Sequence record: NC_070958.1
Reading direction: 5' to 3' (one strand)
Length of the DNA stretch: 64,000 nucleotides
Part shown: piece by piece, positions 4,293 through 53,678 of the stretch
How positions within the stretch are numbered: position 1 is the stretch's first letter
Layout of the letters: every line of letters starts with the position of its first letter
Notes under the pieces: model-generated
What the model was told of the DNA's origin: nothing
The model's input: only the letters and a program-made list of their open reading frames with translations
The model's database searches: none
Made by a program: the position numbers and the translations under genes

Positions 4293-4321
4293 TCATTGAT
4301 GCTTATTAGTTAACACGCACA

Positions 4322-4355
4322 AATACCAAGGCTGGGGGAACCCGGTCTTGGTATT
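4322..4355 (+). terminator. Intrinsic terminator
   Basis: AATACCAAGGCTGGG-GGAA-CCCGGTCTTGGTATT. Confidence 0.8.
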
Positions 4356-4375
4356 AACTTTCTATGTCCTATTTA

Positions 4376-4400
4376 TTTATAGATCGATATTATTACAGTG
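4376..4400 (+). promoter_or_regulatory. Putative early promoter, copy 2
   Basis: TTTATAGATCGATATTATTACAGTG. Confidence 0.8.
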
Positions 4401-4468
4401 ACGAACAACTCCATGTTCATTCAATGCAGTCATACGTACTGTCAACCATAACGTATTAGAGGTCTATT

Positions 4469-5200
4469 ATGATTAACGAACAAATGCTTGCTGGTGCCAT
4501 TCGTAAGGCGATCGAACCCCTGACTTCAATCGAGGATAACAACCTCTTTATGTTTGAAGTGGGTCAAGTACTCTGTCGGTTTAAAACCAACGTTTACATG
4601 ATGTTGGACGAAGACATGTGTTGCCGAGATCCCAACGAACTGATTAACTTTGTCATCACTGCCGGTGCGGACGTTGTTAATGCTGGCGGGTACACTGAGA
4701 TCATTAAACGTGACCGAACCGTTCTTCGGATTTCTGGTGTTCATGATTACGGTGCGACTACCCTGGAACAGGGACACGAGTTCTTGTACAACGAAGATAT
4801 CAGCGATCTCATCCCTGCCGACCGTTTGGTCAGAATGCACGATACCCATTTCATGAGTGCGCGTCAAGAAGGGGAAGGTGCGCCCAAGAACGATCTGGAA
4901 CGATTCGAATCCTTAGGGTTCAATCTGGAAAGTGCTCACGGCTATCATTTCAACACTGATCGTTTCCTGGATTCCAGGGCCACTGTAAGTATGACTATCA
5001 GTGGTCGTGTCTTCGCTGCGGCGTACGCTAAGAAGCGTCGTGAAACAGCCGAACGTCATCCTGGGTCTGAAGGTCGTTATCTCAGCCAGGGTCGTGAAGC
5101 TAATCGGTTGCAACGACTGGAAGATGAAAGTAATCCTGTTCCGGAAGAACGTCCTGGTCTTTCCGGCCGTCAGTTCCACATGCAATTCATGGCTAAGTAA
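4469..5200 (+). CDS. Hypothetical protein
   Basis: 243-aa ORF, RBS GAGG, downstream of an early promoter. Confidence 0.8.
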   Translation: MINEQMLAGAIRKAIEPLTSIEDNNLFMFEVGQVLCRFKTNVYMMLDEDMCCRDPNELINFVITAGADVVNAGGYTEIIKRDRTVLRISGVHDYGATTLEQGHEFLYNEDISDLIPADRLVRMHDTHFMSARQEGEGAPKNDLERFESLGFNLESAHGYHFNTDRFLDSRATVSMTISGRVFAAAYAKKRRETAERHPGSEGRYLSQGREANRLQRLEDESNPVPEERPGLSGRQFHMQFMAK

Positions 5201-5209
5201 GGAATACAA

Positions 5210-5776
5210 ATGAGTAATCTCGTAATCTTAGAAACCAAGGGCAGGGGCTTTTGGAAACCCGTAATTTCCGAAGATGGTGCTAAATGGATCGAAACAAATA
5301 TCCCTCCTCACTTTGGTTCCATCCAAGCACACTCCACAATCATGTCGGTGGGCTATCACTGGAAGAAACATGCTGTACTGTTTAGCATCATGGGCACCTT
5401 GCGTGGATACGACATCTTTATTAACGCATGGTCCCTTACAACCGACACCTGTACTCCTCGTCTGGTAAGAGTAAGGTTGGAAGGTCAACCACTTGGATGG
5501 CTTTCCAAAGAGGAATCCCTGCGGTACCTCAAACGTTGGTTGTTGAGTGAAGGGCTCTACACAGTGGCAGGTTATCCTCCCAGAACCAGGAAGATGATCT
5601 ATCAGATGCTGGAGGAGATAAAGGATGATCATGTAACCACTTACTACCCTGGCTATCTATACAGGCTAAGTAAACATCATGGTCGTTGGCGTTTATCTCA
5701 CGACGGAAAAGTTTGCCTGGATATCAATCATCTCAATCAAATCACTCAAGCCAATCTGTACCATTTGGCCGTGTAA
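5210..5776 (+). CDS. Hypothetical protein
   Basis: 188-aa ORF, RBS AAGGA overlapping the upstream stop. Confidence 0.75.
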   Translation: MSNLVILETKGRGFWKPVISEDGAKWIETNIPPHFGSIQAHSTIMSVGYHWKKHAVLFSIMGTLRGYDIFINAWSLTTDTCTPRLVRVRLEGQPLGWLSKEESLRYLKRWLLSEGLYTVAGYPPRTRKMIYQMLEEIKDDHVTTYYPGYLYRLSKHHGRWRLSHDGKVCLDINHLNQITQANLYHLAV

Positions 5777-8297: not shown

Positions 8298-8732
8298 TTG
8301 ATAAAATGGTGGAACATAAAAATGTGGTTCGTGATAAGGGAGGTAACAGACCGGTTCGTTTTGAACCGGGTGGTAAACTGGGCGTCTGATAAGACCCAGA
8401 AACACCTTGTCGGTAGCCTTTCCGGTGCCGTTGTGTTCTGTGTGTTCTTACTCATGATTCTGGCTAACGTTTCCGTTAAAGCCATGACTCTGTGGTATGA
8501 ACGCCGAGCTCTTCTCGACAACTTGACTCATGTAGAGGCAAGAATGTTAGACGTGCAAGAGAACACGAATCTCTTTATCGGTGTACTCCATGAGACGAAT
8601 GAATCTAAACAGGCTTTGATCGCTGACAACATCAAGTTGAAAAATGACCTTAGCTTGTTGATGCTTCGTAACAAGGAGTTGGTAAAGAGAAATCGGCTGC
8701 TTGAAAAGGAGTTAGATCTCTCCCAGAAATAA
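8298..8732 (+). CDS. Single-pass membrane protein with a C-terminal coiled coil
   Basis: Hydrophobic LVGSLSGAVVFCVFLLMILANVSV followed by a heptad-rich tail; TTG start is uncertain. Confidence 0.6.
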   Translation: MIKWWNIKMWFVIREVTDRFVLNRVVNWASDKTQKHLVGSLSGAVVFCVFLLMILANVSVKAMTLWYERRALLDNLTHVEARMLDVQENTNLFIGVLHETNESKQALIADNIKLKNDLSLLMLRNKELVKRNRLLEKELDLSQK

Positions 8733-24243: not shown

Positions 24244-27200
24244 TTAACCTAATCCAACGGTGTTCGGTCGACCACCTTTACCTTGGCTGGCCATCAGGTC
24301 ATTCAACCTACCAAGCTGACTGATGATCCCACTCAACAATTGCTGAGCTCCTTCATCACTGACTGCTTGTGTTCCCGTGCCAGTCTGTTTGGGAGCTGGT
24401 TTGGGGGCTGGACCAACACTAGAAACAGTGGTGGGACCTGCCGGTTGACTTACTGGTGCCGGAGCACTCGGTTTGGGAGCCGGAGCCTGAACTGGTGCCG
24501 GACTCGGAACTGGGTTAGTAACAGCGGCGGTTGGTGCCGCACTAGGAGATACCGGCGGAGACGCTGTCGCAGCTTTCTGTTGATTAACGCTGCTCTTATC
24601 CAAGAGCTCATCGACTTCCTGCTTATGAGTCTTCTTGGTAGATGCGACTTTCTCTTCAGCGGCCTTGGGGACATTCTGATCGGCAGCGTTAGGAACATCC
24701 GCTATCTTATCTTCACCGCCAGAGGTCGGTGCAAAGTCGGAGGTCTTTGTCGGACCCGCTGCTTTGATTTGACCGTTCTGGAGTTTAGCAAGATATTCGG
24801 TATATGCCTTACGACGTTCGTCAGTAAATGGAACAGAGTTACCACCGTTGATGCCACGAACAGCACTATCGAAGTCACCAGTCGTCGCAATGGACTTGAT
24901 CGCTTTATTACCCAGAAGGTAACGAACAGCGGAGTCTGCTACAACGTTAGGATCTTCAGATACCAGTCGTGGGTTACTTACGACGTCTATCCCTGTCTCA
25001 CGCTTGTACTTTTCGTAGTTGGCTTTACCAGTGAGCTGGAACAAACCACGACCACGATACAACCAACCATCCTCAGGCTTCTCGTTACCGAGTGTGGGAC
25101 CTTTGGGCGCTCTACCATACACATACATCGCACGTTGTTCTGGTGGCATTGCTGCTACCTTTTCCGCTGTAGCCATGTCTGGTATGTTCCTGAAATACTT
25201 CTTCAGGGTTGGTGCAGACCAGTTGGTGTTTTCTACCGTGGACTTGTAGTTCCCCGTTTCAACCTTGGCAAGTGCCAGAGCGAGAGCAATCTGCTTGTTG
25301 TCTGTGATACCAGCACGGAGCAGACCTTGAAGGAGGAGTTGTTCACCCTGTTCCGGAGTCATGGAGAGACCTTGGTCATCACCTGCCTTCAGAGTGGGAT
25401 CCATTTCCCAACCTTCACTGAACCCACCACTATACTGACCACCGCTACCAGCACCTACTGTCCCTGGGGTAGTTCCCATTCCACCAGGAGGGAAGGCATT
25501 AGCAAAGCCATTGCTTGCGTAGTTGTTTCCACCGAAAGTCCCACCTTGCTTACCGGCTTGTTCCCTGCGTTTCATACGCATGGCAGTCAGTTCGGCAATA
25601 CGGGCCTGTTCAGCTTGTTTCCTGGTTTCGGACCTATCTTGGAGTTGCTCACCGATTGCTTTAGAAGCGGCCTCCTCCATTACCGGGTCGCGCAGCGCTG
25701 CTTTCATTGCATCGCTGTTAAGCGACTTAATGTAAGTATCAGCCCTATCGCTGTCGGTACCGGATTGAGCACCTTCGAACGGACTCGCTTTCACGTTCCA
25801 GACAGAAGTCTCTTCACCATCAACCATTACCATGATCTCTGACAGCACTTTAGCTATTTCGGCTTTGTTGCTATTAGAGAGCTGACGCCAACCTTGTTTC
25901 GGAGATGACCCACGTTGTTTGTAAACCAGTGCGTAGTACTTCTGGAGTACAGGGAGGAAACGTGATTCGAACCAAGCCTTCCAGTTCGCCATCATCAGTT
26001 CTGTTTTGATCCTGAACATCGGCTTGAAGAGAGCCAGTACAGACTCCAGTGGGATTTCGAGTTTCCCCAGCCCATTGGAAAGAACCATGTTCTCTTCGCA
26101 ATAACGTTCAAGTTTCAGAACTGCATCTACACGCCAGTTGATATTGGCATCGTTACCGTACACGGCAAGACGAGCAAGCGTGAATGGTTCGATTTCTGTG
26201 TCTCCATCTTTGTGGAGGTCAGATATGTCGATGTCCTTAATTTCCGCTGTGACAGCGAAGGTTTTGTCGATGTGCTCTTGTGACCTGATTAACGACTCGT
26301 TACCGAACTTATTCTGGAACCAAGCGACGACCTTATTGTCCGATACTTCCGGATTCAGGTTGGCTTGACGTTGCTCATCATAAGTCCTCAACTTGAGACC
26401 GTCTGCCTTCTTCTCGGCTGGATAAGCTTTACGAAGTTCATTCATCAAATCAGCGACTTCGCCAGTGGTAGCAATTCTTGACATCGTCCCAGTATCTTGG
26501 TCAATCGGGACGTCGATAGTGTAAGGATTGGTCGACATGTGGCCAACGGCTTCCTGTACACGCTCTGCGACAAGAACTACTTCATGGGTCTGACCGGCAT
26601 CGTACTCTTGAAGATCGCCAAACCTTGCAGCGTTAGCCGCGGCAACGAAAGTCAAGAAGATGGGCTTGAACCGTGCCTGGAACCAAGTGTTGATATTGTC
26701 ACGTGGAACCGGAGCCGAGTTCTCAACGAACTGTCTGAAGACTTCAGCGACCGCCTCGGGTTTACTGAAACCTGCCGACCCACTACCCACATTAACATGC
26801 GGGAGCAACATCATCTCGAGACGTTGTACACGTTCTGCTAAATCACTCCGCCATTCACGAATACCGTACATCGCGAAACGAAGACGTTTCTGAATGGAGT
26901 TGGCCAGCAGAGTTGTCCGGTAAGTGGTGCCGTTGTACTTGTACCCTTCCGAGTTAGCCATATGCTGTTCGGCGTCACGACGGTCTGTGAACAACTGTCC
27001 ATCATCAGTCCAGTACACACCAGTGTTCTTGATACCGTCAATCCAACTCTTGGGCATTACTGCTTCAAGAACCGTGGTCCCGATACCGATCTGAGGAATC
27101 CAGTTTGCAGCATCCTCTATCTGATCAGCAGTGGTCACTGGACGTTTCTGGTTGAACATGTTCTCTTCAGTAGGTGTGGAAGAACTGTCGTCACCTGTCA

Positions 27201-30200
27201 ACAGGTTGTATGCTAGAGCACTACCACCAAGGAGTGCGCCAACACGACCCATCCCTTTATTGAGTTTACCCCCTCGTCCACCAGGACCGCCCATACCAAG
27301 CAGTCCGCCGATACCGCTACCGGCCATCCTGGCAATGGGACCTAACAGACCACCCAACATCTTTATACCTCCGCTAAGAAGTTTAAAGATGGGAGAGCCG
27401 ATACCCAACACACCAGAGAACAACGCACTTCCAATCGTCCCTAAACGTTTCACACTGGCAGCCATGGAACCGCCAACCATCCCGAGTAATGAACCCAGTG
27501 GGTTCTTGAAGAATCCGCCGATGGAACCCATCATGTCGTAGAGCTTGCCAAAGAGACCAGGTTTCTTACCCTTCTCTTCACCTTCCCCTTTCTTCTTACT
27601 CTTACCGGTGAGTGTATCACCAATATCGATGATTGCTTTCTGGACTCGGTCAGATTGCGATGCTGCGGCCTGACGCGCTTTATCCTCAAGGGAGTTCTTA
27701 CGCATCGCCGGACCACCAGCGTCATCAAGTTCTTCGTCCTCAATCTCCATGCCAAACTTTTGGGAAAGGAGTTTGTAGATACGATCAAGACGACGCTCAA
27801 CCCCGTTCATGTTGGTACCACGACCACGAACCGCAGAGACGTGTGAGCTGGCTTGCTCGTTAGAACGCTCGAAACCAAGCTTACCCATCATGTTGGTAAA
27901 GAGTTGTTTACCCATACCGACAGCAGCACCAGCCATGTTAGAACCCATGGTTCCCACTTGTCTGATACGTTGGCCTGTACGAGTCACCAAACCTTCATCA
28001 AACTCGGCTTGGGAGATAAGTTCGTTACCTTCTTCATCGTAAACTGGACCAGAGATTTCGTTCCAACCCTTGACAGGTTTGAAAGTTCCGTTCTCATCTT
28101 TCCAGTATTCAACGTTCTTAAACCCTACTGCACGGAGACGGGGGTTCTGGAGATCACCTTTCACAAAGACGTCTTGTTGATAGATGATTTCTTTACCCAT
28201 GTCGATACCGGCGCGGAGTTTACCTATTGGGTTCACAAAGTTGTAGGCATTGACAATCATGCCCTTAGCGGTTTCGATCCCACGAAGCACTACAGCGCGA
28301 CCATCAGGACCGAAGATGCGCCCACCCAGTTCACGAACTGTGATGATTGCTTTGGATACCACGTCAATGACAGGACCTTTAATTTCACGGTACGTGTTAA
28401 TAACACGTTTAGTGATCGCGTCAATGTACTCACCAGCTTTGAGCTTTGCTGACTTCAGAATGCTTTCACCGTTTTCATCTACGATGTCTTCATCATCAGA
28501 AGGTTCGTTTGCACTGACATTTTCTTTACGATCCTTGTTACCCCAGTACTGAACGAGACCACCCAGAGCCAGTCCACCCACCGCCATAGATGCAGCGGCA
28601 ATAGGGTTAGATGCAAAGTTGGAGGCAATGCCACCAAGTACGCCACCCAACACTATCGGAGAGTTCTTGACCAGTAAGTCCATACCGCGACCGAACATAC
28701 CTTCCGGGAACAGACCTTTGATCTTACTCATCAGACCTTCTTTAGCCTGCTCTTCTTGGCGTTCCTCATTGGCGTTCTTTGGAGCACCTGAGAACAACTT
28801 GCCTTTATTAGCAAGATCCAGAAGTGAAGAAAGGATTGTTTCCATCCGCTGATTACTTTCTGCAATCTTGGATGTGTTGGAAACGATCTCTCCGGTCTGA
28901 GTGTCCATGTATGCCGTATCCGGCTTACCGGACTTGGAAGACATGTTGCTGCTAGCCAGCACGTCCAGTTTCTCTGTCAGTGTGTTGAGAGAACTGGAGA
29001 GACCAGCGAAGGAGGCACCTTCAGTACGCTTTCCATCATTGGTCGGAGCGGGGCGATCAGGAATGTGGAAACTGTTCCTGGTTTTCTTACCTTGAGTTTT
29101 GTCGCTGGGGTTCATCCCTCTGAGCGCTGGGTTGTTAGGATCGTCCATGAACATGCCGATACGTTCGTGGAATACTTCCATATCAACCTTGTCGATACCG
29201 TTCTCTGTATAGATCACACCAAGGTCACGAAGCAACTGTTCATTACCAGTGGCCCTGAGCATGTCGATACGTTCAGCGATATTCGGAGCGAGGTCTTTCA
29301 GGTTGGTTGCTGCGGACCCTGCTTTATTGAGACGCTCTTGATACCTGGAGTTCCGCATCTCTGTCATCACTTGCATCCGCTCGAAACCTGTGGTCTCGTT
29401 GAAGCGAGCAATGTCTTGATCACGCAGTCCAAAGTGACGACGTACCACCGCATGGATCTCGTCGAGCATCGGACCAGAGATACCAGGAATGTCCCCGATA
29501 TAGTAGAACGGGTTAAAGTTCTTCTCTCGGTCAACGTCTCTTGCGATCACCTTAGCAAATGCTTTACGGGCTCCCTGGGACAACGTCTTCTTGGGATCCA
29601 GGTCATCAACGAACTCAAGAGCAGCAGTCGCATACCGATCGAATTCAGCGGCGGGCATCAGGTCGGCTTGAACAGCGATCTGTTTGTTGGTTTCGTTCTG
29701 GAACTGACCACGCATGTAGTTGTAAGTAACCAACTCGGCATTACTGTCACCAGTTCTGATCATCTCCAACAGTTGGTTGGTACGAGAAATCAAACCAGGT
29801 ATTACTTCATTCAGTGTGACGTTGTTACCCTGAGTCCAGATACCAGCATCGACCAAATCACGTGGGTTACGTTTCTTGAGAGTGTACTGTGTACCTTTAG
29901 CCTGGTTCATCTCAGACATAAACGAGTTCATTGCGGCTTTAGCGCGGTTACTCGCGGCGTTCTGAATTGTCCACCTGGCTTTACTCATGGGTTGTTTGTC
30001 GGGAGGAAGACTGGCAACGTAGTCTTCGTAGTCAATGAACGGCATCTCGTCCATTGCTTGGTAGTCTTCAGCCATGAAGTTGATCAAGCCAACTCCGGCG
30101 TTAGACATGTACGAAGCTTTCGAACCTGTGTTGGAGAGTCGCTCCCATTGACGTCGCAATGCCTTTGCTTCAGCTGGGTTTTTCTTGGCAAGGCTTTCCA

Positions 30201-31305
30201 ACATTCTTTTACCAGGACCTCGGGCAAAGAAGTTGGGGAGGTTACGGACAGCAGCACCCGCTAACCCTCGACCAGCCATGTCTCCTAACATGCCAGCAGA
30301 TACTGGCATACCGTCAGACATCTCGAGCATGTCGGCGACCATTCCCAACACACTACTGGCGCTATCTGAAGCATCTTGCCTGGCTTCTTTACCAAAACGA
30401 TCCCTGATGAGACCAGTCAGGCCGCCTACACGACGCCCTACTGTACTAAACAGGGAATCCCGCATGTACTGTTTGGAAGCGGTGAAGTTCGATGTCTTTT
30501 GGTAATCAGACATCATCGTCCCTTTCAAGATCTTCTTCAGTTCAGCAACCTGGGCGTGCATGCCCTTTTCCATGAACTTGTAGTACTTGACGTTAGCCAC
30601 ATAGCCTTTCGCCATCAAGTTCAATTTGGTCTGTTCGATTTTGAACTGTACGTTGCGCTGGTAATCGTTAAGATCACGAACACTGGTTTCGATATTGACA
30701 AGTTGGCGGTTACCGGCCATGACGGCAGAACTGATTTGACCACCAACGTTTGCAGACATTACGTTGAGGGAGTTCGTCATTTCTGAGAACAACCCTTCTT
30801 GACGACTCATAACGCTGTCGAGCACCAAAGTCAAGTCATAATCAGACTCTTCTTCAATACCCTCCATGCTATTATAAGACCCATCACTCTTCTCCCAGTC
30901 AGAGAAATCTTTCTGGGAAAAGTCATCCATTTTGTTACGAAGGCCGCCAGGTAACTTCTCACCGAAACGGTTGGAAAGCTGGCCGGCAATGCTTTGTAAT
31001 GATCTGACCGATTCGTAGTTTTGCTCTTTGAGCTCTGTCTTGAGTTCATCGTAGCGTTCGATGGCACGGTTGGTTCGGTCGAAAGCGTTACTGAAAGTGT
31101 TGGGTAAAATAGTGCGGAGTGATCTAGTGATCGCCGCACCTGACCCTACTGTTTCATTAACGAGTCCACCCAAGAACCCCGACGCCATACTTGACACGAA
31201 TCCTTTACCTTTGAAAGGATCGATATCAAAATCTCCATCGAGATCGAAATCACCCGCAAACGGGTCATCCCAATCATCGAGACCGAGATCATCTTCATAT
31301 GACAT
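24244..31305 (-). CDS. Tape-measure / cell-puncturing protein with a C-terminal GH19 lysozyme domain (phiKZ gp181 position)
   Basis: 2353 aa; AKVETGNYKSTVEN, DGWLYRGRGLFQLTGKANY and INGG are GH19 motifs (about 24790-25320); Pro/Ala-rich tail; divergent from the vRNAP genes. Confidence 0.9.
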   Translation of the reverse strand: MSYEDDLGLDDWDDPFAGDFDLDGDFDIDPFKGKGFVSSMASGFLGGLVNETVGSGAAITRSLRTILPNTFSNAFDRTNRAIERYDELKTELKEQNYESVRSLQSIAGQLSNRFGEKLPGGLRNKMDDFSQKDFSDWEKSDGSYNSMEGIEEESDYDLTLVLDSVMSRQEGLFSEMTNSLNVMSANVGGQISSAVMAGNRQLVNIETSVRDLNDYQRNVQFKIEQTKLNLMAKGYVANVKYYKFMEKGMHAQVAELKKILKGTMMSDYQKTSNFTASKQYMRDSLFSTVGRRVGGLTGLIRDRFGKEARQDASDSASSVLGMVADMLEMSDGMPVSAGMLGDMAGRGLAGAAVRNLPNFFARGPGKRMLESLAKKNPAEAKALRRQWERLSNTGSKASYMSNAGVGLINFMAEDYQAMDEMPFIDYEDYVASLPPDKQPMSKARWTIQNAASNRAKAAMNSFMSEMNQAKGTQYTLKKRNPRDLVDAGIWTQGNNVTLNEVIPGLISRTNQLLEMIRTGDSNAELVTYNYMRGQFQNETNKQIAVQADLMPAAEFDRYATAALEFVDDLDPKKTLSQGARKAFAKVIARDVDREKNFNPFYYIGDIPGISGPMLDEIHAVVRRHFGLRDQDIARFNETTGFERMQVMTEMRNSRYQERLNKAGSAATNLKDLAPNIAERIDMLRATGNEQLLRDLGVIYTENGIDKVDMEVFHERIGMFMDDPNNPALRGMNPSDKTQGKKTRNSFHIPDRPAPTNDGKRTEGASFAGLSSSLNTLTEKLDVLASSNMSSKSGKPDTAYMDTQTGEIVSNTSKIAESNQRMETILSSLLDLANKGKLFSGAPKNANEERQEEQAKEGLMSKIKGLFPEGMFGRGMDLLVKNSPIVLGGVLGGIASNFASNPIAAASMAVGGLALGGLVQYWGNKDRKENVSANEPSDDEDIVDENGESILKSAKLKAGEYIDAITKRVINTYREIKGPVIDVVSKAIITVRELGGRIFGPDGRAVVLRGIETAKGMIVNAYNFVNPIGKLRAGIDMGKEIIYQQDVFVKGDLQNPRLRAVGFKNVEYWKDENGTFKPVKGWNEISGPVYDEEGNELISQAEFDEGLVTRTGQRIRQVGTMGSNMAGAAVGMGKQLFTNMMGKLGFERSNEQASSHVSAVRGRGTNMNGVERRLDRIYKLLSQKFGMEIEDEELDDAGGPAMRKNSLEDKARQAAASQSDRVQKAIIDIGDTLTGKSKKKGEGEEKGKKPGLFGKLYDMMGSIGGFFKNPLGSLLGMVGGSMAASVKRLGTIGSALFSGVLGIGSPIFKLLSGGIKMLGGLLGPIARMAGSGIGGLLGMGGPGGRGGKLNKGMGRVGALLGGSALAYNLLTGDDSSSTPTEENMFNQKRPVTTADQIEDAANWIPQIGIGTTVLEAVMPKSWIDGIKNTGVYWTDDGQLFTDRRDAEQHMANSEGYKYNGTTYRTTLLANSIQKRLRFAMYGIREWRSDLAERVQRLEMMLLPHVNVGSGSAGFSKPEAVAEVFRQFVENSAPVPRDNINTWFQARFKPIFLTFVAAANAARFGDLQEYDAGQTHEVVLVAERVQEAVGHMSTNPYTIDVPIDQDTGTMSRIATTGEVADLMNELRKAYPAEKKADGLKLRTYDEQRQANLNPEVSDNKVVAWFQNKFGNESLIRSQEHIDKTFAVTAEIKDIDISDLHKDGDTEIEPFTLARLAVYGNDANINWRVDAVLKLERYCEENMVLSNGLGKLEIPLESVLALFKPMFRIKTELMMANWKAWFESRFLPVLQKYYALVYKQRGSSPKQGWRQLSNSNKAEIAKVLSEIMVMVDGEETSVWNVKASPFEGAQSGTDSDRADTYIKSLNSDAMKAALRDPVMEEAASKAIGEQLQDRSETRKQAEQARIAELTAMRMKRREQAGKQGGTFGGNNYASNGFANAFPPGGMGTTPGTVGAGSGGQYSGGFSEGWEMDPTLKAGDDQGLSMTPEQGEQLLLQGLLRAGITDNKQIALALALAKVETGNYKSTVENTNWSAPTLKKYFRNIPDMATAEKVAAMPPEQRAMYVYGRAPKGPTLGNEKPEDGWLYRGRGLFQLTGKANYEKYKRETGIDVVSNPRLVSEDPNVVADSAVRYLLGNKAIKSIATTGDFDSAVRGINGGNSVPFTDERRKAYTEYLAKLQNGQIKAAGPTKTSDFAPTSGGEDKIADVPNAADQNVPKAAEEKVASTKKTHKQEVDELLDKSSVNQQKAATASPPVSPSAAPTAAVTNPVPSPAPVQAPAPKPSAPAPVSQPAGPTTVSSVGPAPKPAPKQTGTGTQAVSDEGAQQLLSGIISQLGRLNDLMASQGKGGRPNTVGLG

Positions 31306-39873: not shown

Positions 39874-40623
39874 GTGATCGATATCACTACTCTTAAACAT
39901 GATCGAGGACTGCCTAGCGCAGTCCTCAAACTCATGCCTGATGGCTCCGCTGTCGCTACCAAGCGATTGAAGTGTTGTATACCCAAGAACTGGGAGCGGA
40001 GTAATCTTGCTGAGATCGCTGACGTTGTAACGACTATTCTGATGGTGGGTTTGATCTGTGACGGTAAGTATGCAATGCTGGGTGGAATGACTCGCATTGT
40101 TATGAAGCCGGGTGAGATCGATGAAATCTCTATCGGTGGTACTCGGTACTACATCTTTGATTTCGAGCCGGGTGAAGTGGTTATCGAGAACATGACCATT
40201 CCTCAGGACAGCAACATCGGATATTACTACTACCTCGAGTTCACCAAATATGCTCGACTACCGTGGTATTGTTCCGAGGCCAGTTTGCTCGCCGTTTACG
40301 ACGCAGCAAAGTTCTACACTGGCAAAGGGTTTGGGACCAGTAACCAATGCATCCGGGTTTTGTACGCGCTTGTAATGCGTGATCCCAACAACCTGGATTT
40401 GCCATTCCGTTACTCCCCTGATTTAAACAAAGGTGGGAAACCGAAAATCATCGGTATCAACAACCCGGGTCAACTGCTCAACAGTACCTTCTCTCGTCTC
40501 TCGTCTGGTTATATGGCTGATAACATCATCGGTGGTATCCTCAACCCTGATACGAAGGTTACTGAGCTTGAAGAAGTAATCCGTGGTCTTCCTGCCGAAC
40601 TGAGAGACAATAGCAATGTCTGA
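39874..40623 (+). CDS. phiKZ gp176 / SPN3US gp244-like protein, putative additional vRNAP subunit
   Basis: 249 aa, GTG start, immediately upstream of the prohead protease; PWY and FRY patterns recalled for this family. Confidence 0.6.
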   Translation: MIDITTLKHDRGLPSAVLKLMPDGSAVATKRLKCCIPKNWERSNLAEIADVVTTILMVGLICDGKYAMLGGMTRIVMKPGEIDEISIGGTRYYIFDFEPGEVVIENMTIPQDSNIGYYYYLEFTKYARLPWYCSEASLLAVYDAAKFYTGKGFGTSNQCIRVLYALVMRDPNNLDLPFRYSPDLNKGGKPKIIGINNPGQLLNSTFSRLSSGYMADNIIGGILNPDTKVTELEEVIRGLPAELRDNSNV

Positions 40624-41461
40624 AATTAGTTTCGGGAATATCATCCTGGCTAACAGCGGTAAACAGGGCATACTGAAACCCGACGCTACCGGTCGTTATC
40701 TGTTGAATGCTGGCGGGTTCAATATCGCCAATGCTAGCGGGATTAACTATCCCGCTAACCAATACATCGTCTCCCAGATGGACAAGAACTCCGACCTGAT
40801 GCGTCGTGTCAGTCAGGGTTATTGCAAGATGGAAGTTGAACATCCGGAACCTTTCGTTTATGTGGAAGAGAACGGTGTTCGCTACAAGAAAGCAATGACT
40901 TCCATTCTGGAGTGGATCAACCGGCTCCGTAGCTACGATCCTGATCGTATTTGCGGGCTCATCAGTGAGATCTCCTTCCGTCCCACAGATCCCAACGATC
41001 TGACCAAGCCGATCTACAACATGATCTACTGTGAACCCTTCGGTCCCCGTGGACCTGAGTTCAAAGAGTCGCTGAACAACCCCCGTCACAACACGGCCGT
41101 TTCCATCCGTACTCAGGTTTCTCCTTTCCGTCCTGGTGACAACAAGAAAGAAGTTGAGTACTGGGTTGGTTATGACTGGGTCGGTGAACCTGGTATGGTT
41201 CATGCCAACAAGCACATGACCGCTGGTTGTGAATCGCTGATCCTCAATCTGAACGACAACGTACAGAAGTTCAAAGTCGCTGACGTTCTGGATGCAATGG
41301 AAGAGATGTTCACCGATGCCAGCGCTAATGCTGAAGCTCTGGAGCGGGTTGGTGGTATGGAGTCTCTCAATGCCATGCGTGAAATGCACAACCGTCTGAA
41401 ACAGAATTACCGCACAGGCGAAACTGTTCGGATGGGCGCCAGCTTTGCCGATATCTTCTAA
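40616..41461 (+). CDS. Prohead (head maturation) serine protease, phiKZ gp175-like
   Basis: MEVEHP (His), AVSIRT (Ser), YDWVGEPG (Asp); C-terminal AGCE and GGME self-cleavage-type motifs. Confidence 0.88.
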   Translation: MSEISFGNIILANSGKQGILKPDATGRYLLNAGGFNIANASGINYPANQYIVSQMDKNSDLMRRVSQGYCKMEVEHPEPFVYVEENGVRYKKAMTSILEWINRLRSYDPDRICGLISEISFRPTDPNDLTKPIYNMIYCEPFGPRGPEFKESLNNPRHNTAVSIRTQVSPFRPGDNKKEVEYWVGYDWVGEPGMVHANKHMTAGCESLILNLNDNVQKFKVADVLDAMEEMFTDASANAEALERVGGMESLNAMREMHNRLKQNYRTGETVRMGASFADIF

Positions 41462-47477: not shown

Positions 47478-47502
47478 CTTTCACACCTATATTACTTAGG
47501 TG
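47478..47502 (+). promoter_or_regulatory. Putative early promoter, copy 5
   Basis: CTTTCACACCTATATTACTTAGGTG. Confidence 0.8.
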
Positions 47503-48685: not shown

Positions 48686-49222
48686 ATGCACCCTAATGCA
48701 GAACGTGTTATGAACGGGGCTTTTGATGAAATCATTTTTTATGATAAGATCGAAGGTCCGCGAATTTACATGGATTGGGACTTCGGTCAGAATCCCATCA
48801 CTGTAAGCGGAAAAGAAAGTGACATGAAGATCCCTAGGCTTGAGCGGCTGGCAAAGATTCTGGAGTGGGAGGATAAAACCTCTTGGGTCCTGACATTTAC
48901 CAATGGTGAATGGCCGAGCTGTTCCATCGAGTCTGTTGACCGTCGTGTCACCAAAGATCCTGACTGGGAGCTTCCCTTTGACACTGTGGAAGAATGTCTT
49001 CTGCACATCCACGATCACATGGGTGAGAAAGGGTTGGTCTATCGTTCCAAGCAAGAAATGCCGCTCGATTTGACCAGTGTTGTCAAGCCGTGGGATCTCA
49101 GTAAGGAAACCTACACCAACGAGGAAGTTCGCATTCTCATGGAAATGATGAAGGCGGAATTCGTTGAGACAACCAACCAACTTTTCGATCGTATGCTGGG
49201 TCGTCTGGCAATAAAGGAATAA
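48686..49222 (+). CDS. Hypothetical protein
   Basis: 178 aa, RBS AGGAG. Confidence 0.8.
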   Translation: MHPNAERVMNGAFDEIIFYDKIEGPRIYMDWDFGQNPITVSGKESDMKIPRLERLAKILEWEDKTSWVLTFTNGEWPSCSIESVDRRVTKDPDWELPFDTVEECLLHIHDHMGEKGLVYRSKQEMPLDLTSVVKPWDLSKETYTNEEVRILMEMMKAEFVETTNQLFDRMLGRLAIKE

Positions 49223-49233
49223 GGAGTATAAAA

Positions 49234-49782
49234 ATGAAAAAGCTGGGTGTGTTTATTGTACTACTCTTTGCATCGATGTTTGCCATGGCCGGTGGTACTA
49301 CGAAGGCCAATCTGGACCTCGGTAGCATGGGCTGGGTAGTCGACAAACGTACCGAAGACGGCAAAGCGTACATGATTCGTAATAAAGGGAACAACGGTGG
49401 AGTCATTCGACTCGGCTGTAATGTCCCTGGCGGGGATGTTTCCGTCAAGTACATCTATCGGGGACTCAATAAAGACTTTTTCATTATTGAGCTTCTCACT
49501 GATGCCAGACTGGATTCCTATCCCTATACGGCCATGTATGGAGTTAAGTCATTGAACCAAGCAGCGATGTACAAGCAGTTCGCTATGACCGATGCTGGTT
49601 TCATGATGACTCGTTTTGCCGAAGGTGCGGCTGAGCGATTCTTTAAGAGTCGCAAAGATCGTGAGGTTTACGGACTCCCCCGTCCCATTGGTACGGAGCT
49701 GTTCGTTGGTCACGAGCAAGTAGCTGATTATATCAATGATGTTAAAGCCACTTGCGGTTTCACTGAGGAACCTCTTCACTGA
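49234..49782 (+). CDS. Exported protein A (Sec signal peptide, Cys62/Cys174)
   Basis: MKKLGVFIVLLFASMFAMA signal with AxA cleavage site; RBS AAGGAG. Confidence 0.85.
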   Translation: MKKLGVFIVLLFASMFAMAGGTTKANLDLGSMGWVVDKRTEDGKAYMIRNKGNNGGVIRLGCNVPGGDVSVKYIYRGLNKDFFIIELLTDARLDSYPYTAMYGVKSLNQAAMYKQFAMTDAGFMMTRFAEGAAERFFKSRKDREVYGLPRPIGTELFVGHEQVADYINDVKATCGFTEEPLH

Positions 49783-49815
49783 GGAACCTTTTCTATTAAC
49801 TTAGGAAACCGGTAA

Positions 49816-50310
49816 ATGTCCTGTGTAAATATTGAAAGACTTGAAGAGGTCGGATACGTCATAGAACGTAGGTCGGATAGACTGGACCAATTCATTTTAA
49901 GATCAAGGGAGCCGGGTGATCGCCCTGGGGTATTTGCGAGTGATGGTATCGAAGACAATCCTCGCTGGACTTCTGGTGGACGTATGTCATTCACAGTGGC
50001 ATGTGACGTTTCTGCAAAGAAGTACATCATCTCACTGTTCATCTTTGGACGGTCGGATGAACTACCCCCTACGTATTTCCTGTTGGACGTTGAACCGACA
50101 TCTCTTTGGCTGGCTGTTGAAACAGTCTTAGAGACTCAACCTCTGACTCCGGTTGACGAAATGATTGAAGCTCGAGACGACATCATTTCTGACGGAAAGG
50201 TTTATACTACCGACCAGGTGGTCACCCTGATAAAGTTAGTCCGCGGAGATCTCAACTCTCCTGAGGGTGATAAGCACATCGCGATGCTGCTCAAGAGTGT
50301 GCAGCCATAA
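49816..50310 (+). CDS. Hypothetical cytoplasmic protein
   Basis: 164 aa, RBS AGGA. Confidence 0.75.
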   Translation: MSCVNIERLEEVGYVIERRSDRLDQFILRSREPGDRPGVFASDGIEDNPRWTSGGRMSFTVACDVSAKKYIISLFIFGRSDELPPTYFLLDVEPTSLWLAVETVLETQPLTPVDEMIEARDDIISDGKVYTTDQVVTLIKLVRGDLNSPEGDKHIAMLLKSVQP

Positions 50311-50318
50311 TAAATAAG

Positions 50319-50350
50319 CTCCTAGGAACGCTTGTGGGCGTTCCTAGGAG
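50319..50350 (+). terminator. Terminator-like hairpin (CCTAGG arms)
   Basis: CTCCTAGGAACGC-TTGTGG-GCGTTCCTAGGAG. Confidence 0.8.
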
Positions 50351-50422
50351 TATATGTGTGTCATTTAATACAGATGCTGTAACTATTCGTTATAGAGCGT
50401 TACAGGGCTCTAGATACATAAT

Positions 50423-50447
50423 TTTTCAGCTATACATTATTATAGTG
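50423..50447 (+). promoter_or_regulatory. Putative early promoter, copy 6
   Basis: TTTTCAGCTATACATTATTATAGTG. Confidence 0.8.
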
Positions 50448-50481
50448 TAATGACAATCATTATTCTACTAAGGAGCACGAC

Positions 50482-51087
50482 ATGAAAACCATTATTGCTT
50501 TTGTATTGTTTATGTTCGCTGTCGGTGTAGAAGCCGCCAGCTACGATATCAAAGAGGACCCGGTCTTCAATCTGGAAACTGCGGTCAACAATGATGTCAG
50601 TGTTAAAAAGATCTCTGGTAAAACTCACATCAAGATCCAGGGTGTGAGTGCCGAGGGTAAACACAATCAGTGGGAGTTCATCTGCACTCCTTTCAAACCT
50701 GAACTTGTCATCAAGAACAACTCGGTTAACGAGGATGGTCAGATGACGAAGGAGGGAACTGGTTTCGCCATTCAGTTCTATATGGATGAGGAAGAAGTGG
50801 GACGTCCAATTGGCGAATGGGACAACGCGGACATTTATGTTTGGGATGATGGTCGTCAAGCTCTCGACCTCGCTCTTAACCGTTTACTTCCTATCGGCCA
50901 AGGCTGGATCGTATTTACAGTGTACGACATCGGGATGGGTAATGACAGGATTCCGGTTTCTTACAGTCACAAGTACCCGGTCGGTGTTGCACAAGACATC
51001 GTGCGGAAACTGGTTAAAGCGGACGCTCTGGTTGATTGCAACTCTGCATTGATTCAAACTGGCGCTACCATCAAGTTCACTAACTAA
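50482..51087 (+). CDS. Exported protein B (Sec signal peptide, Cys68/Cys186)
   Basis: MKTIIAFVLFMFAVGVEA signal; RBS AAGGAG. Confidence 0.85.
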   Translation: MKTIIAFVLFMFAVGVEAASYDIKEDPVFNLETAVNNDVSVKKISGKTHIKIQGVSAEGKHNQWEFICTPFKPELVIKNNSVNEDGQMTKEGTGFAIQFYMDEEEVGRPIGEWDNADIYVWDDGRQALDLALNRLLPIGQGWIVFTVYDIGMGNDRIPVSYSHKYPVGVAQDIVRKLVKADALVDCNSALIQTGATIKFTN

Positions 51088-51098
51088 GGAAAAATACC

Positions 51099-51719
51099 AT
51101 GCGTTTTATTATTGCTTTTCTTACACTGGTTCTCTCCACTGGCTCCTATGCTTTCAGTTTCGGTAAGAAAGCTGTTCCGGTAGAGGAGAACAGCTTCGAA
51201 ACATCTTGGGCTCGTGTCCTCACTCTCAAAGATCAAATCTCTATGGGATGGACTGCTCGGGACATGAGTGACCGGGAATTCGGTATTACCATGATGTGCG
51301 ACAGCATCCGCTCGACCATCTGGAATTACAAGTTCCCAGGCCAACCTGGTGTAAAGGTAGACGGTCTTGCCATGTTGATGGTCCGTGACGTCGGAAACGA
51401 TTTGTCGAAGATCGACCTGGAGACAGAAAGCCGGAACTACATGGTGATCTTTGATAGCAACTATGCAATCGACGGTTCTGCGAATCTGGAAGTGCTGGTG
51501 AAAGACTCCAAGCGCATCGATGTGATTCCTGAACACATCAAGTTCCTGTGGGTTGGTTATAAAGCTAACCATACTGGTACCTGGATTGTTGCATCTGGAC
51601 CCAAGATGTCCGCTGAAGGTATGTTCGGTCGTATGCAGTCTTACGCCGACTTCCCTCGTAGTCAATTGGACACTTGCAGTCGTTCCATGGAGGAACCTTC
51701 TTATAAGGTAGCCAACTAA
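51099..51719 (+). CDS. Exported protein C (Sec signal peptide, Cys67/Cys193)
   Basis: MRFIIAFLTLVLSTGSYA signal; RBS AAGGA. Confidence 0.85.
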   Translation: MRFIIAFLTLVLSTGSYAFSFGKKAVPVEENSFETSWARVLTLKDQISMGWTARDMSDREFGITMMCDSIRSTIWNYKFPGQPGVKVDGLAMLMVRDVGNDLSKIDLETESRNYMVIFDSNYAIDGSANLEVLVKDSKRIDVIPEHIKFLWVGYKANHTGTWIVASGPKMSAEGMFGRMQSYADFPRSQLDTCSRSMEEPSYKVAN

Positions 51720-51725
51720 GAAAAG

Positions 51726-51747
51726 CCCCGTGTTCACGGACACGGGG
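51726..51747 (+). terminator. Terminator-like hairpin
   Basis: CCCCGTGTT-CACG-GACACGGGG then TCTTT. Confidence 0.7.
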
Positions 51748-51764
51748 TCTTTAAGGAGTTATCC

Positions 51765-51899
51765 ATGAATAACAAAACTGTTGTATTTCTTTTAATAATA
51801 GGACTGGCCATAATCTGGTTAGGTAGTGAACACGTTGAACTGGAAGAAGCTGTCGATAACCTCACAGAAGTTATCGGTCAGTGTGTCAATCAAGAGTAA
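51765..51899 (+). CDS. 44-aa membrane-anchored peptide missing from the ORF track (MNNKTVVFLLIIGLAIIWLG...GQCVNQE)
   Basis: Strong RBS AAGGAG, N-terminal hydrophobic helix, acidic amphipathic tail. Confidence 0.75.
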   Translation: MNNKTVVFLLIIGLAIIWLGSEHVELEEAVDNLTEVIGQCVNQE

Positions 51900-51929
51900 T
51901 CTCTCGTCTTTCTTAATGGAGTTCTGTAA

Positions 51930-52628
51930 ATGTTTAAGTCACTTGCTCGTCAAACTGCTGTTATCGCTTTATTTGTTGGTGTTCTATTTGGCGGCATTGG
52001 TTACAAGTTAGCCGACTACCGTACTCACGAAGTTAAGAGTGATGCCATTGTCACTCATGAAGTAATGCCTGAGTGGAAACTTTTACAGCTCCGGGAGATC
52101 TCTAAAGAAAGCAGGGGTGATGCTATCGCTCCCGTCGATCAGCAAGAACTCATTATGAACTATGCTGAAGTCCAAGACCATGCTGCGTTCTACGAGTTCA
52201 TCGCTAAGGGTTCCGATGACCGAGTGGTTCTTTACTGTGACGCTCACACCAACTCTGTCAACATCGGTTACCAGTTTGGTTTGGTAGATGAGGAACTGTC
52301 CGAACGGCTTGATGGATTCTCTATCAAGGTTCTCCGTCCAGGCAGTACTGGTTACTTTATCTTTGATGAAATGCGTCCTGCGCTCTATGACACTCATCAA
52401 GAAAGCACCTATCTCAATGCAGGAATGAAAGCGTTGGCTGATGAAGATCCCGAAGCTCTGGTGGTCTTTACTCTTCGTTATAGCGGTACGGAAGAGGAGT
52501 CTCTGGTAGCAGGTGTATCGCCAGCCTTTAAGGTTCGGGATGTACTTGCAGCCTGGAATGCAGTTCCTACATCAGCGTGTGAATTCGTCAACCTCACTGA
52601 TTACCCTTCTTCGTTTGAACAGAAATAA
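51930..52628 (+). CDS. Membrane-anchored/exported protein D (Cys103/Cys217)
   Basis: N-terminal AVIALFVGVLFGGIGY signal-anchor; RBS GGAG. Confidence 0.85.
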   Translation: MFKSLARQTAVIALFVGVLFGGIGYKLADYRTHEVKSDAIVTHEVMPEWKLLQLREISKESRGDAIAPVDQQELIMNYAEVQDHAAFYEFIAKGSDDRVVLYCDAHTNSVNIGYQFGLVDEELSERLDGFSIKVLRPGSTGYFIFDEMRPALYDTHQESTYLNAGMKALADEDPEALVVFTLRYSGTEEESLVAGVSPAFKVRDVLAAWNAVPTSACEFVNLTDYPSSFEQK

Positions 52629-52632
52629 AAAT

Positions 52633-52662
52633 AACTCTCTAGCCTTAACGGGCTAGAGGGTT
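52633..52662 (+). terminator. Intrinsic terminator (CTAG arms)
   Basis: AACTCTCTAGCC-TTAACG-GGCTAGAGGGTT. Confidence 0.8.
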
Positions 52663-52695
52663 CTTCATTCTATATTTGTTTTTGACATACATTCC

Positions 52696-52720
52696 ATCTC
52701 AGATAGATATTACCTAAGTG
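52696..52720 (+). promoter_or_regulatory. Putative early promoter, copy 7
   Basis: ATCTCAGATAGATATTACCTAAGTG. Confidence 0.75.
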
Positions 52721-52756
52721 ATAGATAACCAATATCTTTATTCACACTTAGGAGAG

Positions 52757-52945
52757 ATGACGATGTTCGCTATCAAAAACATTACTGTTCTGTTCACCGT
52801 TGTTATCTCCCTGGTGGGGATTAACCATTTGACAGTTAACAACCACATGAAACTCCATGATGGTGTCCGACCTGTTGTTCAGTACGATCACGCAAATCGT
52901 ATACTGGATGTTAGCAATCTCGAAGTAAAACCAAATACCTTTTAA
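52757..52945 (+). CDS. Small single-pass membrane protein
   Basis: ATG at 52757 after AGGAG; ITVLFTVVISLVGI hydrophobic segment. Confidence 0.7.
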   Translation: MTMFAIKNITVLFTVVISLVGINHLTVNNHMKLHDGVRPVVQYDHANRILDVSNLEVKPNTF

Positions 52946-52955
52946 GGGGAAATAA

Positions 52956-53678
52956 ATGAAAAACCAACCTAATGGCGAACTCAGCGTTCAGGTAGATTAC
53001 ATCCGTAAATTCATGTTTCTGTTTCAGGAGCATGATGTACCTATGAGCTTGATCCGTGCTTGTGTTAAGTCCATTGCACAGAACGATCTGGCTCACAACC
53101 TTGGACATGTTCATGGTGTTTGTGAACTGGCCAGTCAGATGGCCGAGTGCCGCGTCAATAAGGATGACCAATTGAAGGTTATGCTGGCAGCACTGTTCCA
53201 CGATCTGGGTTGTCGTTATAACCGGGATGATCATCATCTCATCAGCTACGGTCTCACCTATCAGTATCTGGCTGAGTACTGGCCTGAGCGTTTCACTCCT
53301 GATGAAATCAAGGAGATCGCTGTGGCTGTGCTGGAACACCGTAGTTCCAGTAAGGGTAAACCGACCAGTCTGATTTCTGAGATCGTTTCGGTAGCGGACA
53401 GTGGCAAACCTAACATCGAGATCTATATCAAGCGGGCGTTGCAATTCCGCATCTCTCGTGGTGATCTCGAAAACAAGGGTAAAGATGTACTGTTCGATGA
53501 AGTATATCATCACCTCCTGGAGAAGTTCGAGAGCAATACCGGGTACCACTGGAACAGCTACCCTGATATAGGACTCATGCACTTCAAAGAAGAATGGGAT
53601 GAATTCCAGGTTCTTCTTCACCCGACTCTTGTAAGTCACGCTATGAGAACCATAAGCGAGATTTACAACAAGCTGTAA
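52956..53678 (+). CDS. HD-domain metal-dependent phosphohydrolase
   Basis: DLAHNLGHVHGV, AALFHDLG, AVLEH and VSVAD give the H...HD...H...D ligand pattern. Confidence 0.88.
   Translation: MKNQPNGELSVQVDYIRKFMFLFQEHDVPMSLIRACVKSIAQNDLAHNLGHVHGVCELASQMAECRVNKDDQLKVMLAALFHDLGCRYNRDDHHLISYGLTYQYLAEYWPERFTPDEIKEIAVAVLEHRSSSKGKPTSLISEIVSVADSGKPNIEIYIKRALQFRISRGDLENKGKDVLFDEVYHHLLEKFESNTGYHWNSYPDIGLMHFKEEWDEFQVLLHPTLVSHAMRTISEIYNKL

Follow-up and report, generated by a model that had tools for sequence, protein, structure and literature searches.

Four genes in a 64,000-nucleotide stretch of DNA (sequence record NC_070958.1; this whole stretch is called the window here) encode exported proteins that each carry two cysteines and otherwise have little in common, which raises the question whether they are diverged copies of one gene, and what a phage might do with such a set in the envelope of its host. 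Bases 49000-53000 of the window are those of Aeromonas phage D6 (MN131137.2; 100% identity); base 1 of the window is base 195832 of the D6 record, and the window ends where the 259,831-base-pair record ends, i.e. at the right end of D6. Phage D6 belongs to the genus Ludhianavirus of the Chimalliviridae, the nucleus-forming jumbo phages, and the four genes, termed A, B, C and D in the following, are annotated as encoding hypothetical proteins (D6_0252, D6_0254, D6_0255 and D6_0257, respectively). Our answer to the first part of the question is given with high confidence: the cluster consists of diverged paralogues of one undescribed family. The explanation as a whole, in which these exported paralogues would be early binders of envelope targets, is plausible and falls a little short of probable. 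The four genes are:

49234..49782, + strand: gene A (D6_0252), 182 amino acids; signal peptide ending AMA; beta-rich mature domain; Cys62/Cys174
50482..51087, + strand: gene B (D6_0254), 201 amino acids; signal peptide ending VEA; Cys68/Cys186
51099..51719, + strand: gene C (D6_0255), 206 amino acids; signal peptide ending SYA; Cys67/Cys193
51930..52628, + strand: gene D (D6_0257), 232 amino acids; N-terminal membrane anchor; Cys103/Cys217

Good Shine-Dalgarno sites precede A, B, C and D. The leaders of A, B and C are of the classical n-h-c type: a short, basic n-region is followed by a hydrophobic core of 12-16 residues and then by a small-x-small site; the leader of D has a longer hydrophobic segment in which a clear cleavage site is absent, and is predicted from its sequence to be a signal anchor or an uncleaved signal peptide. 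Leaders were judged by a hydropathy heuristic and the -3/-1 rule, for the D6 proteins as well as for all other members of the cluster in related phages (73 members in total). A sequence-only reading of this DNA had attributed a signal peptide or signal anchor to all four open reading frames (ORFs), and the heuristic finds a hydrophobic leader in each of A, B, C and D. The two cysteines per ORF at the positions given above, the residues reported before each cysteine, and the distances from the second cysteine to the C-terminus (8, 15, 13 and 15) are exact on translation. The low identity reported for the remainder of the proteins was also borne out: in BLASTP and phmmer comparisons among the four, only the signal peptides of B and C are alike.

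Two cysteines by themselves are common, for exactly two are found in nine of 21 size-matched ORFs of the window. The particular arrangement, with two cysteines 100-130 residues apart and the second near the C-terminus, was found only in A-D among the 54 window ORFs of at least 100 amino acids, and a hydrophobic leader likewise only in A-D among these 54; leader and cysteine pattern together are confined to A-D in the whole D6 genome. Elsewhere, D6 encodes about ten further exported proteins, none of which has the cysteine pattern or is matched by the hidden Markov models (HMMs) of the family. These other exported proteins (record positions 183050-184189 [D6_0183, D6_0184], 153024-153482, 190682-191683 and 155357-158227; none family-related) include two adjacent ones with near-identical leaders and a YadA-like signal-peptide protein of 956 amino acids.

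When the leaders are trimmed, exactly two cysteines remain in the mature domains of 73 of 73 cluster proteins, 103-129 residues apart and with the second 2-32 residues from the C-terminus, and an N-terminal signal peptide, lipobox or signal anchor is present across the 73 members by the same heuristic; the cytoplasmic flanking genes encode zero to four cysteines. In an alignment of 30 sequences of the types B, D and E (E is a fifth member, described below), the two cysteines are the only invariant columns of the mature domain, and the start methionine is the only other invariant column. Hosts with DsbA select for an even and minimal number of cysteines in exported proteins. D6 also encodes a putative thioredoxin (D6_0007; record 8468-8731), which is cytoplasmic and not evidently connected with the exported disulfide proteins.

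Orthologues of A, B and D were found by tblastn (17-40% identity) in jumbo phages of several host genera: the Aeromonas phages PS1, PS2, pAEv1810, CF8, ZPAH34, AhC3_1, AerS_266, AVP1 and ACP1; and Klebsiella phage N1M2, Serratia phages Yubaba and Sureiya, Kosakonia phage Kc263, Edwardsiella phage pEt-SU, Pantoea phage Survivor, Pseudomonas phage OBP and Shewanella phage SXP01. This set coincides exactly with the phages that have 62-72% identity to D6 in the tail-tube protein; inspection of the locus in EL, Miami and VP4B, which form the next clade out (tail tube 44-48%), revealed no such cluster. The family is restricted to Ludhianavirus, Ferozepurvirus, Chaoshanvirus, Nimduovirus, Petsuvirus, Branisovskavirus and their uncultured relatives. 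One candidate at the equivalent Elvirus locus, EL gp002 (L031:11135-11590, - strand; 151 amino acids, exported, Cys 32/129, beside an HD-like gene), was set aside, as relatedness to the family was undetectable. For C, tblastn and word-based searches gave no match, and an exhaustive HMMER scan of 1.84 billion representatives retrieved four homologues (28-36% identity), three of them on contigs long enough to show the neighbouring genes; all three lie inside the same block of genes, on Ludhianavirus-like contigs.

This block is syntenic wherever it was examined, i.e. in D6, seven further isolates and ten metagenomic contigs (contigs and loci are designated by L numbers). It comprises, in this order, a conserved cytoplasmic gene of 200 codons, A, B, a variable slot occupied by C in D6, in some phages a small transmembrane peptide, D, an HD phosphohydrolase, and the convergent genes for tail tube and sheath. 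Member E is confined to contigs L010-L013, and B is absent from the metagenomic contigs nearest to D6 (L021, L026 and L028). At least five lineages (D6-type C, CF8_239, AhC3_82, OBP_305 and a signal-anchored group, F) occupy the C slot, which has been refilled repeatedly; A, B and D are retained across genera as distinct lines of orthologues whose order does not change. Between phages N1M2 and Yubaba, A, B and D are 65, 39 and 74% identical, and the flanking genes 88 and 92%; between D6 and phages of other genera, the HD protein is 46-48% identical, and A, B and D 17-35%. By these comparisons, the family diverges at about twice the rate of its cytoplasmic neighbours. In phage Kc263 (L038:396-647, 3935-4549 and 4643-5266), RefSeq calls the A orthologue an 'adhesin' and its B counterpart a 'putative exopolygalacturonase', labels that are unsupported by the searches made here; the A orthologue has its apparent start 22 codons downstream of the annotated start, and an exported protein of 83 amino acids encoded upstream is labelled 'outer membrane lipoprotein RcsF'.

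For the question of common descent, alignments of orthologues with the leaders trimmed were compared by hhalign. B and D match at 98.5% (E 2e-15, 144 columns) with both cysteines invariant, and B and D are, at the level of such profiles, certainly homologous; E joins them (96% with B, 87% with D), and the signal-anchored C-slot members of L010-L013 match those of Yubaba, OBP and L024 at 96%. Against a combined B/D/E profile, C scored 61.6% (E 7.8e-5, 148 colinear columns, both cysteines aligned), OBP_305 67%, and A 12.5% (E 2e-3, 127 columns, both cysteines aligned), with 28% for A against D. In C, OBP_305 and A, both cysteines and a motif of strand, cysteine, Asp or Asn, turn, strand and Tyr matched the B/D/E alignments. 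Since matched cysteines could inflate such profile scores, columns were shuffled with the cysteines held fixed: the real score was above 200 of 200 shuffles for C (z 10.1), for A (z 7.0-7.5) and for OBP_305 (z 8.4), and for the signal-anchored F group it was not above all shuffles (z 2.5).

The same relationship emerged when the B/D/E HMM was run against the 517 ORFs of all loci: after 39 members, the next 13 matches were nine A proteins, OBP_305, two C proteins and one decoy, so that A members are the top non-member matches, and A and C members stand above 478 other ORFs with a single exception. Kc263 gp238, an A orthologue which was in no training set, was matched by the B/D/E HMM at 2e-5, and the B orthologue of Kc263 was matched by the A HMM at 0.014. 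A phmmer link between OBP_302 (an A protein) and OBP_305 disappeared once the leaders were trimmed and was discarded as a signal-peptide artefact. Hence C is very probably, and A probably, a member of the family. The sequence-only reading had proposed one diversified family with a single architecture; this is strong for B and D and good for C (62%, z 10), but only moderate for A (12-28%, z 7).

AlphaFold models were made for A (from an alignment of 15 sequences) and for C (five sequences). The model of A (predicted local distance difference test, pLDDT, 77; predicted template modelling score, pTM, 0.68) has seven strands, with Cys62 right after the third, followed by helix-strand-helix-strand-helix, with Cys174 right after the last helix. 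The order of elements in the model of C matches that of A, and Cys67 ends its third strand; the earlier observation that the first cysteine ends a beta structure is hence reproduced at the level of these models (strand 56-61 before Cys62 in A, strand 60-67 in C). In Foldseek searches of BFVD, the A model retrieved A orthologues only, plus a weak match to a protein of 151 amino acids of Vibrio phage VP4B. A, B/D and C probably share one architecture, as far as the models go, in which a disulfide would pin the helix at the C-terminus to the beta meander.

Two phmmer matches of C stand apart from these comparisons: residues 53-110 (gene at window 51099-51719) match a protein of 1658 amino acids with 14 Calx-beta repeats (E 1.6e-10), and C also matches an NHL/PEGA repeat protein (E 1e-6). 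Both are sums of many weak repeat matches, and may be either a hint of a beta-sandwich or an artefact of composition; the Calx-beta match was left unexplained and was not used as evidence, because the matches are weak and summed and C has no Pfam match.

The four genes lie among the following further features of the locus:

47489..47502, + strand: promoter-like motif ATATTACTTAGGTG, one of six matches to ATATTAYTWWRGTG in the window; heads the unit D6_0249-0250-0251-A-X
49816..50310, + strand: gene X (D6_0253), 164 amino acids, cytoplasmic, with neither a hydrophobic leader nor a match to the family HMMs; not a member
50319..50350, + strand: hairpin with a 13-base-pair stem, closing the unit that contains A; its T run is on the opposite strand, and a terminator role is suggested by position alone
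50434..50447, + strand: promoter-like motif with one mismatch to the pattern; heads B-C-s1-D
51765..51899, + strand: s1 (D6_0256), single-transmembrane peptide of 44 amino acids between C and D
52633..52662, + strand: hairpin after D, closing the B-C-s1-D unit
52707..52720, + strand: promoter-like motif; heads s2, the HD phosphohydrolase and onward
52757..52945, + strand: s2 (D6_0258), single-transmembrane peptide of 62 amino acids after D, behind its own motif at 52707

A stands outside the transcription unit of B, C and D: it lies downstream of D6_0249-0251 in the unit headed by the motif at 47489, and gene X and the hairpin at 50319-50350 come between it and B. Neither do two small membrane peptides flank the cluster, as had been read from the sequence: s1 sits inside it, and s2 follows D. 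The s1 slot is filled by peptides of 46-48 amino acids in L025, L026, AhC3_1 and CF8, and s2 has clear homologues of 60-61 amino acids at the same place in L021, L025 and L028. The slot of gene X is lineage-specific; other Ludhianavirus-like contigs carry differing cytoplasmic genes of 125-168 codons between A and the next member (inserted at L021:4452-4829, L025:5570-6076, L026:4308-4814 and L028:4321-4821, and different from contig to contig).

The promoter-like motif was recognised by listing intergenic regions side by side; a scan for sigma-70 promoters yielded fewer matches than in shuffled sequence, and a search for recurring k-mers in the region upstream of B yielded nothing. The six window matches to ATATTAYTWWRGTG (starts 2808, 4387, 44525, 47489, 50434 and 52707) are all intergenic and all on the + strand, compared with 0.11 expected, and have T-rich sequence upstream; elsewhere in the D6 record the motif occurs at 38394, 62215, 140843, 150361 and 186328, and the strict matches genome-wide number ten, all on the + strand. 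The exact motif is found directly upstream of A or B in AhC3_1, PS1, L011, L012 and L023. It is also present in the more distant jumbo-phage contigs L014, L016 and L018. In jumbo phages that encode RNA polymerases, the single motif that can be found bioinformatically has been the early promoter of the virion RNA polymerase in every tested case (PMC7598289), and their middle and late promoters are unrecognisable by bioinformatic motif search (PMC7598289; for phiKZ, PMC8244752). By analogy, ATATTAYTWWRGTG with its T-rich upstream sequence is probably the early (virion-RNA-polymerase) promoter consensus of the clade, and early expression of the cluster can reasonably be inferred because the motif resembles the early virion-RNA-polymerase promoters of these other phages. 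An early promoter had previously been placed at 50423 in front of B and C: a promoter-like element is present, its real position is 50434-50447, and its early timing follows from the type of motif by the same analogy.

The location of D is of interest for function. Its orthologues in N1M2, Yubaba, OBP, Kc263, SXP01, L010-L013 and L024 have a lipobox, with Asp at position +2 in seven of ten, and the versions in Aeromonas phages have a transmembrane anchor in place of the lipobox. The tether of D has thus been swapped in evolution between a lipobox (phages of enteric bacteria, Pseudomonas and Shewanella) and a transmembrane anchor (Aeromonas phages), as seen at loci L002, L006, L007, L008, L010-L013, L024 and L038. 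Asp at +2 is the signal for retention of lipoproteins at the inner membrane in enterobacteria; the rule differs in Pseudomonas. D would be held at the inner membrane, as every version has a transmembrane anchor or a lipobox, most of the latter with Asp +2; A, B, C and E look soluble from their sequences. An inner-membrane or periplasmic target would therefore fit the tether of D better than the masking of an outer-membrane receptor.

From these observations the following course of events is proposed. A-D would be exported by the Sec pathway; cleavage of the signal peptides would free A, B and C into the periplasm, and D would remain tethered on the outer face of the inner membrane. Each mature domain, of about 140-220 amino acids, would fold as a beta meander, after which helices and strands alternate, and one disulfide, presumably formed via host DsbA, would connect the ends of the third strand and of the last helix. 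Expressed from early virion-RNA-polymerase-type motifs, the proteins could be at the envelope within minutes of infection. Their action would be stoichiometric binding of envelope targets rather than catalysis, because B, D and E conserve only the cysteines and divergence is fast, and the A, B and D lines are nonetheless kept; an example of such a role would be to block later-arriving phages at the peptidoglycan or inner-membrane step. The best-known precedents for early exported binders are superinfection-exclusion and envelope take-over proteins. By analogy with these, an early periplasmic set that closes or re-programmes the envelope is proposed as the role of the cluster, more tentatively than the explanation as a whole; superinfection exclusion or envelope control is ranked first, and a hetero-oligomeric apparatus second, in view of the lasting separation and fixed order of the A, B and D orthologous lines.

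Several results weigh against this explanation. The direct profile comparisons A-C, C-E and F-D were not significant (nor was C-B), and the A model retrieved no B, C or D member from BFVD by Foldseek. Confidence in the C model is low (pLDDT 54, pTM 0.50); its best non-self BFVD matches (212, 235, 197 and 201 amino acids; E 9e-5 to 1.6e-2; template modelling score about 0.4) resemble B-, D- and E-type members in length, and the identities of these accessions could not be confirmed. The A family has an invariant Asp and an invariant Glu, given which catalysis by A may be possible; orthologous lines that are stable and keep their order would likewise suit the subunits of a single complex; and the functional part is argued from analogy, with no known family matched. 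The absence of B, C and D members from the BFVD matches of the A model, together with the lack of pairwise similarity, the low hhalign values for A and the placement of A in another transcription unit, would be accommodated if A, and possibly C, were non-homologous to the others, so that at least two unrelated exported families shared a generic domain-spanning disulfide. We regard this as improbable in view of the shuffles with fixed cysteines (z 7 for A, z 10 for C), the colinear alignments over the full domain in which both cysteines and the strand-cysteine-turn-strand motif are matched, the rank of A members as top non-member matches of the B/D/E HMM, the bridging by Kc263 gp238, and the constant cysteine spacing in 73 of 73 proteins.

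If the members are one family, they might still be subunits of a single periplasmic hetero-oligomer, a machine or scaffold anchored in the inner membrane by D and, in other phages, also by the signal-anchored C-slot member. The predicted co-transcription of B, C, s1 and D, the distinct lines of A, B and D in fixed order across genera, the one member that is always membrane-tethered and the small transmembrane peptides embedded in the cluster would all suit such an assembly, which we nevertheless consider unlikely, though the least so of the alternatives: membership varies (B is missing from L021, L026 and L028, the C slot has at least five lineages, and E occurs only in L010-L013), and divergence is fast and uneven (B 39%, D 74%), which is unusual among co-assembling subunits. 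The sequence-only reading had suggested inhibition of competitors' tail lysozymes, masking of receptors and blocking of envelope-sensing defences as possible functions. A role as Spackle-like periplasmic inhibitors, directed at the tail peptidoglycan enzymes of competitors or at the phage's own GH19 or transglycosylase enzymes, is about as doubtful as non-homology. The proteins are probably early, periplasmic, disulfide-bearing and fast-evolving, as exclusion factors should be, and D6 encodes a protein of 2352 amino acids with a marginal GH19 domain as well as transglycosylase-like proteins; on the other hand, no Spackle, RI, Ivy or MliC/PliC was returned by Pfam, PHROGs, PDB sequence searches or Foldseek against PDB (A model), the models are beta-rich, the tether of D suggests inner-membrane targets, and nothing connects copy number with lysin type. 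That the cluster controls lysis, through T4 RI-like antiholins or lysis-inhibition sensors or through spanin-like envelope disruptors, is very improbable: a periplasmic or membrane-tethered location, the lipoboxes of some D orthologues and the lysis-inhibition-like phenotype suggested for phiKZ (PMC12894885) would suit it, but the cluster lies well away from the lysis-type genes of D6 (record 129841-130599 and 109642-110386), has an early-type promoter motif and a predicted beta-rich rather than coiled-coil structure, and the lysis cassette of phiKZ adjoins its endolysin (PMC12894885).

The preferred explanation, i.e. diverged exported paralogues acting early at the envelope, bears on how the infection of this clade is viewed. 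Research on nucleus-forming phages has focused on the cytoplasm (chimallin, PhuZ, import factors and the early vesicle), and to our knowledge the infection programme of the Chimalliviridae has hitherto been described from the cytoplasmic side only. A conserved, probably early, multi-copy exported set suggests that one large clade, whose hosts belong to Aeromonas, Klebsiella, Serratia, Kosakonia, Edwardsiella, Pantoea, Pseudomonas and Shewanella, devotes genes to the periplasm as well. The family, as defined by sequence comparison, is new to Pfam, PHROGs and PDB, its structural hallmark would be a single domain-spanning disulfide, and its fast evolution resembles that of host-interface or phage-competition proteins; a probable early-promoter consensus for the clade was obtained as a by-product. 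If the members are exclusion or envelope-control factors, they would be relevant to the outcome of co-infections among the jumbo phages under consideration for aquaculture and therapy; a complex of the members, if there is one, would be a new envelope apparatus. As a speculation of very low probability, A, B, the C-slot member, D and the small transmembrane peptides could constitute a clade-specific periplasmic apparatus that is anchored in the inner membrane, installed via Sec in the first minutes and acts at the site of genome entry, some members perhaps being located in the lumen or membrane of the early infection vesicle, which is thought to derive from Sec-competent membrane. With such an apparatus, the infection programme of the Chimalliviridae would gain a component on the side of the envelope or vesicle.

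Other genes of D6 bear on the enzymes that had been invoked as possible targets, a GH19 tail enzyme and an SLT endolysin. The GH19 match is only marginal (25.7 bits, cutoff 25.5), while transglycosylase-like proteins are present. The marginal match lies at residues 2079-2136 of D6_0233 (window 24244-31305, - strand; 2352 amino acids), which is annotated 'putative endolysin' and is probably a tail-associated lysin; D6_0236 has a weak peptidoglycan-binding match only. D6_0122 (record 129841-130599) is transglycosylase-like, has its own signal peptide and lacks cysteine, and D6_0113/D6_0114 (record 109642-110386, - strand), a lipobox protein overlapping a transmembrane protein, have the look of a spanin pair; these are likely the lysis functions of D6, apart from each other and from the cluster. 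D6_0240 (window 40616-41461, + strand; annotated as hypothetical) has a strong Peptidase_S80 match (E 3e-69); Klebsiella phage Miami has an orthologue with the annotation head maturation protease.

Searches of Pfam, PHROGs, NCBIfam and PADLOC with the four proteins and 45 relatives gave nothing recurrent, and neither profiles from the A, B/D/E and C alignments against PDB sequences nor the A model against PDB by Foldseek (best E 0.2, template modelling score at most 0.3) gave a match. T4 Spackle, T4 RI and the known lysozyme inhibitors showed no link in Pfam, PHROGs, PDB sequence search or Foldseek against PDB, the fold search covering A only; likewise, MliC/PliC, Ivy and PliG gave no Pfam or NCBIfam match for any member and no PDB match by sequence, nor by fold for A.

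Among known systems, the phiKZ spanins gp141/gp141.1 are comparable in that a membrane-anchored protein and a lipoprotein are encoded in a Chimalliviridae genome (PMC12894885). They are coiled-coil proteins of mutually overlapping genes, located in the lysis cassette beside the endolysin (PMC12894885), whereas the D6 cluster adjoins the tail tube and sheath genes and its products are predicted to be beta-rich; it lies about 115 kb from the signal-peptide transglycosylase-like gene and apart from the spanin-like pair of D6, so that it is not a lysis cassette and does not have the features of spanins. Exclusion lipoproteins of the T5 Llp/Cor type share the lipobox with the D orthologues of N1M2, Yubaba, OBP, Kc263, SXP01 and L010-L013, but the D proteins are about three times larger; blocking of an outer-membrane receptor by D is unlikely, as judged from the sequences, because most of the lipoboxes have Asp +2 and the Aeromonas-phage versions are transmembrane-anchored. 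MliC/PliC, Ivy and PliG are small disulfide-containing beta-rich proteins, periplasmic or lipoprotein-anchored, that bind peptidoglycan hydrolases; the D6 proteins are larger and lack a conserved inhibitory loop, only the cysteines being invariant. T4 RI is a phage-encoded periplasmic sensor for lysis inhibition with an N-terminal membrane-anchoring signal and a small periplasmic domain; the D6 cluster differs from it in having no neighbouring holin or endolysin, in its beta-rich models and its early-type motif, and gave no match to it in any search. Closest in character are T4 Spackle (Sp, gp61.3) and Imm, which are early, exported, non-enzymatic superinfection-exclusion proteins of the periplasm or inner membrane; made within the infected cell, they act on its envelope from the inside. 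The D6 proteins differ from these in being about twice as large and beta-rich, in occurring as three to five paralogous copies in a syntenic cluster, and in having no sequence, family or fold match to them; what they share with Spackle and Imm is the export signals and the probable early timing.

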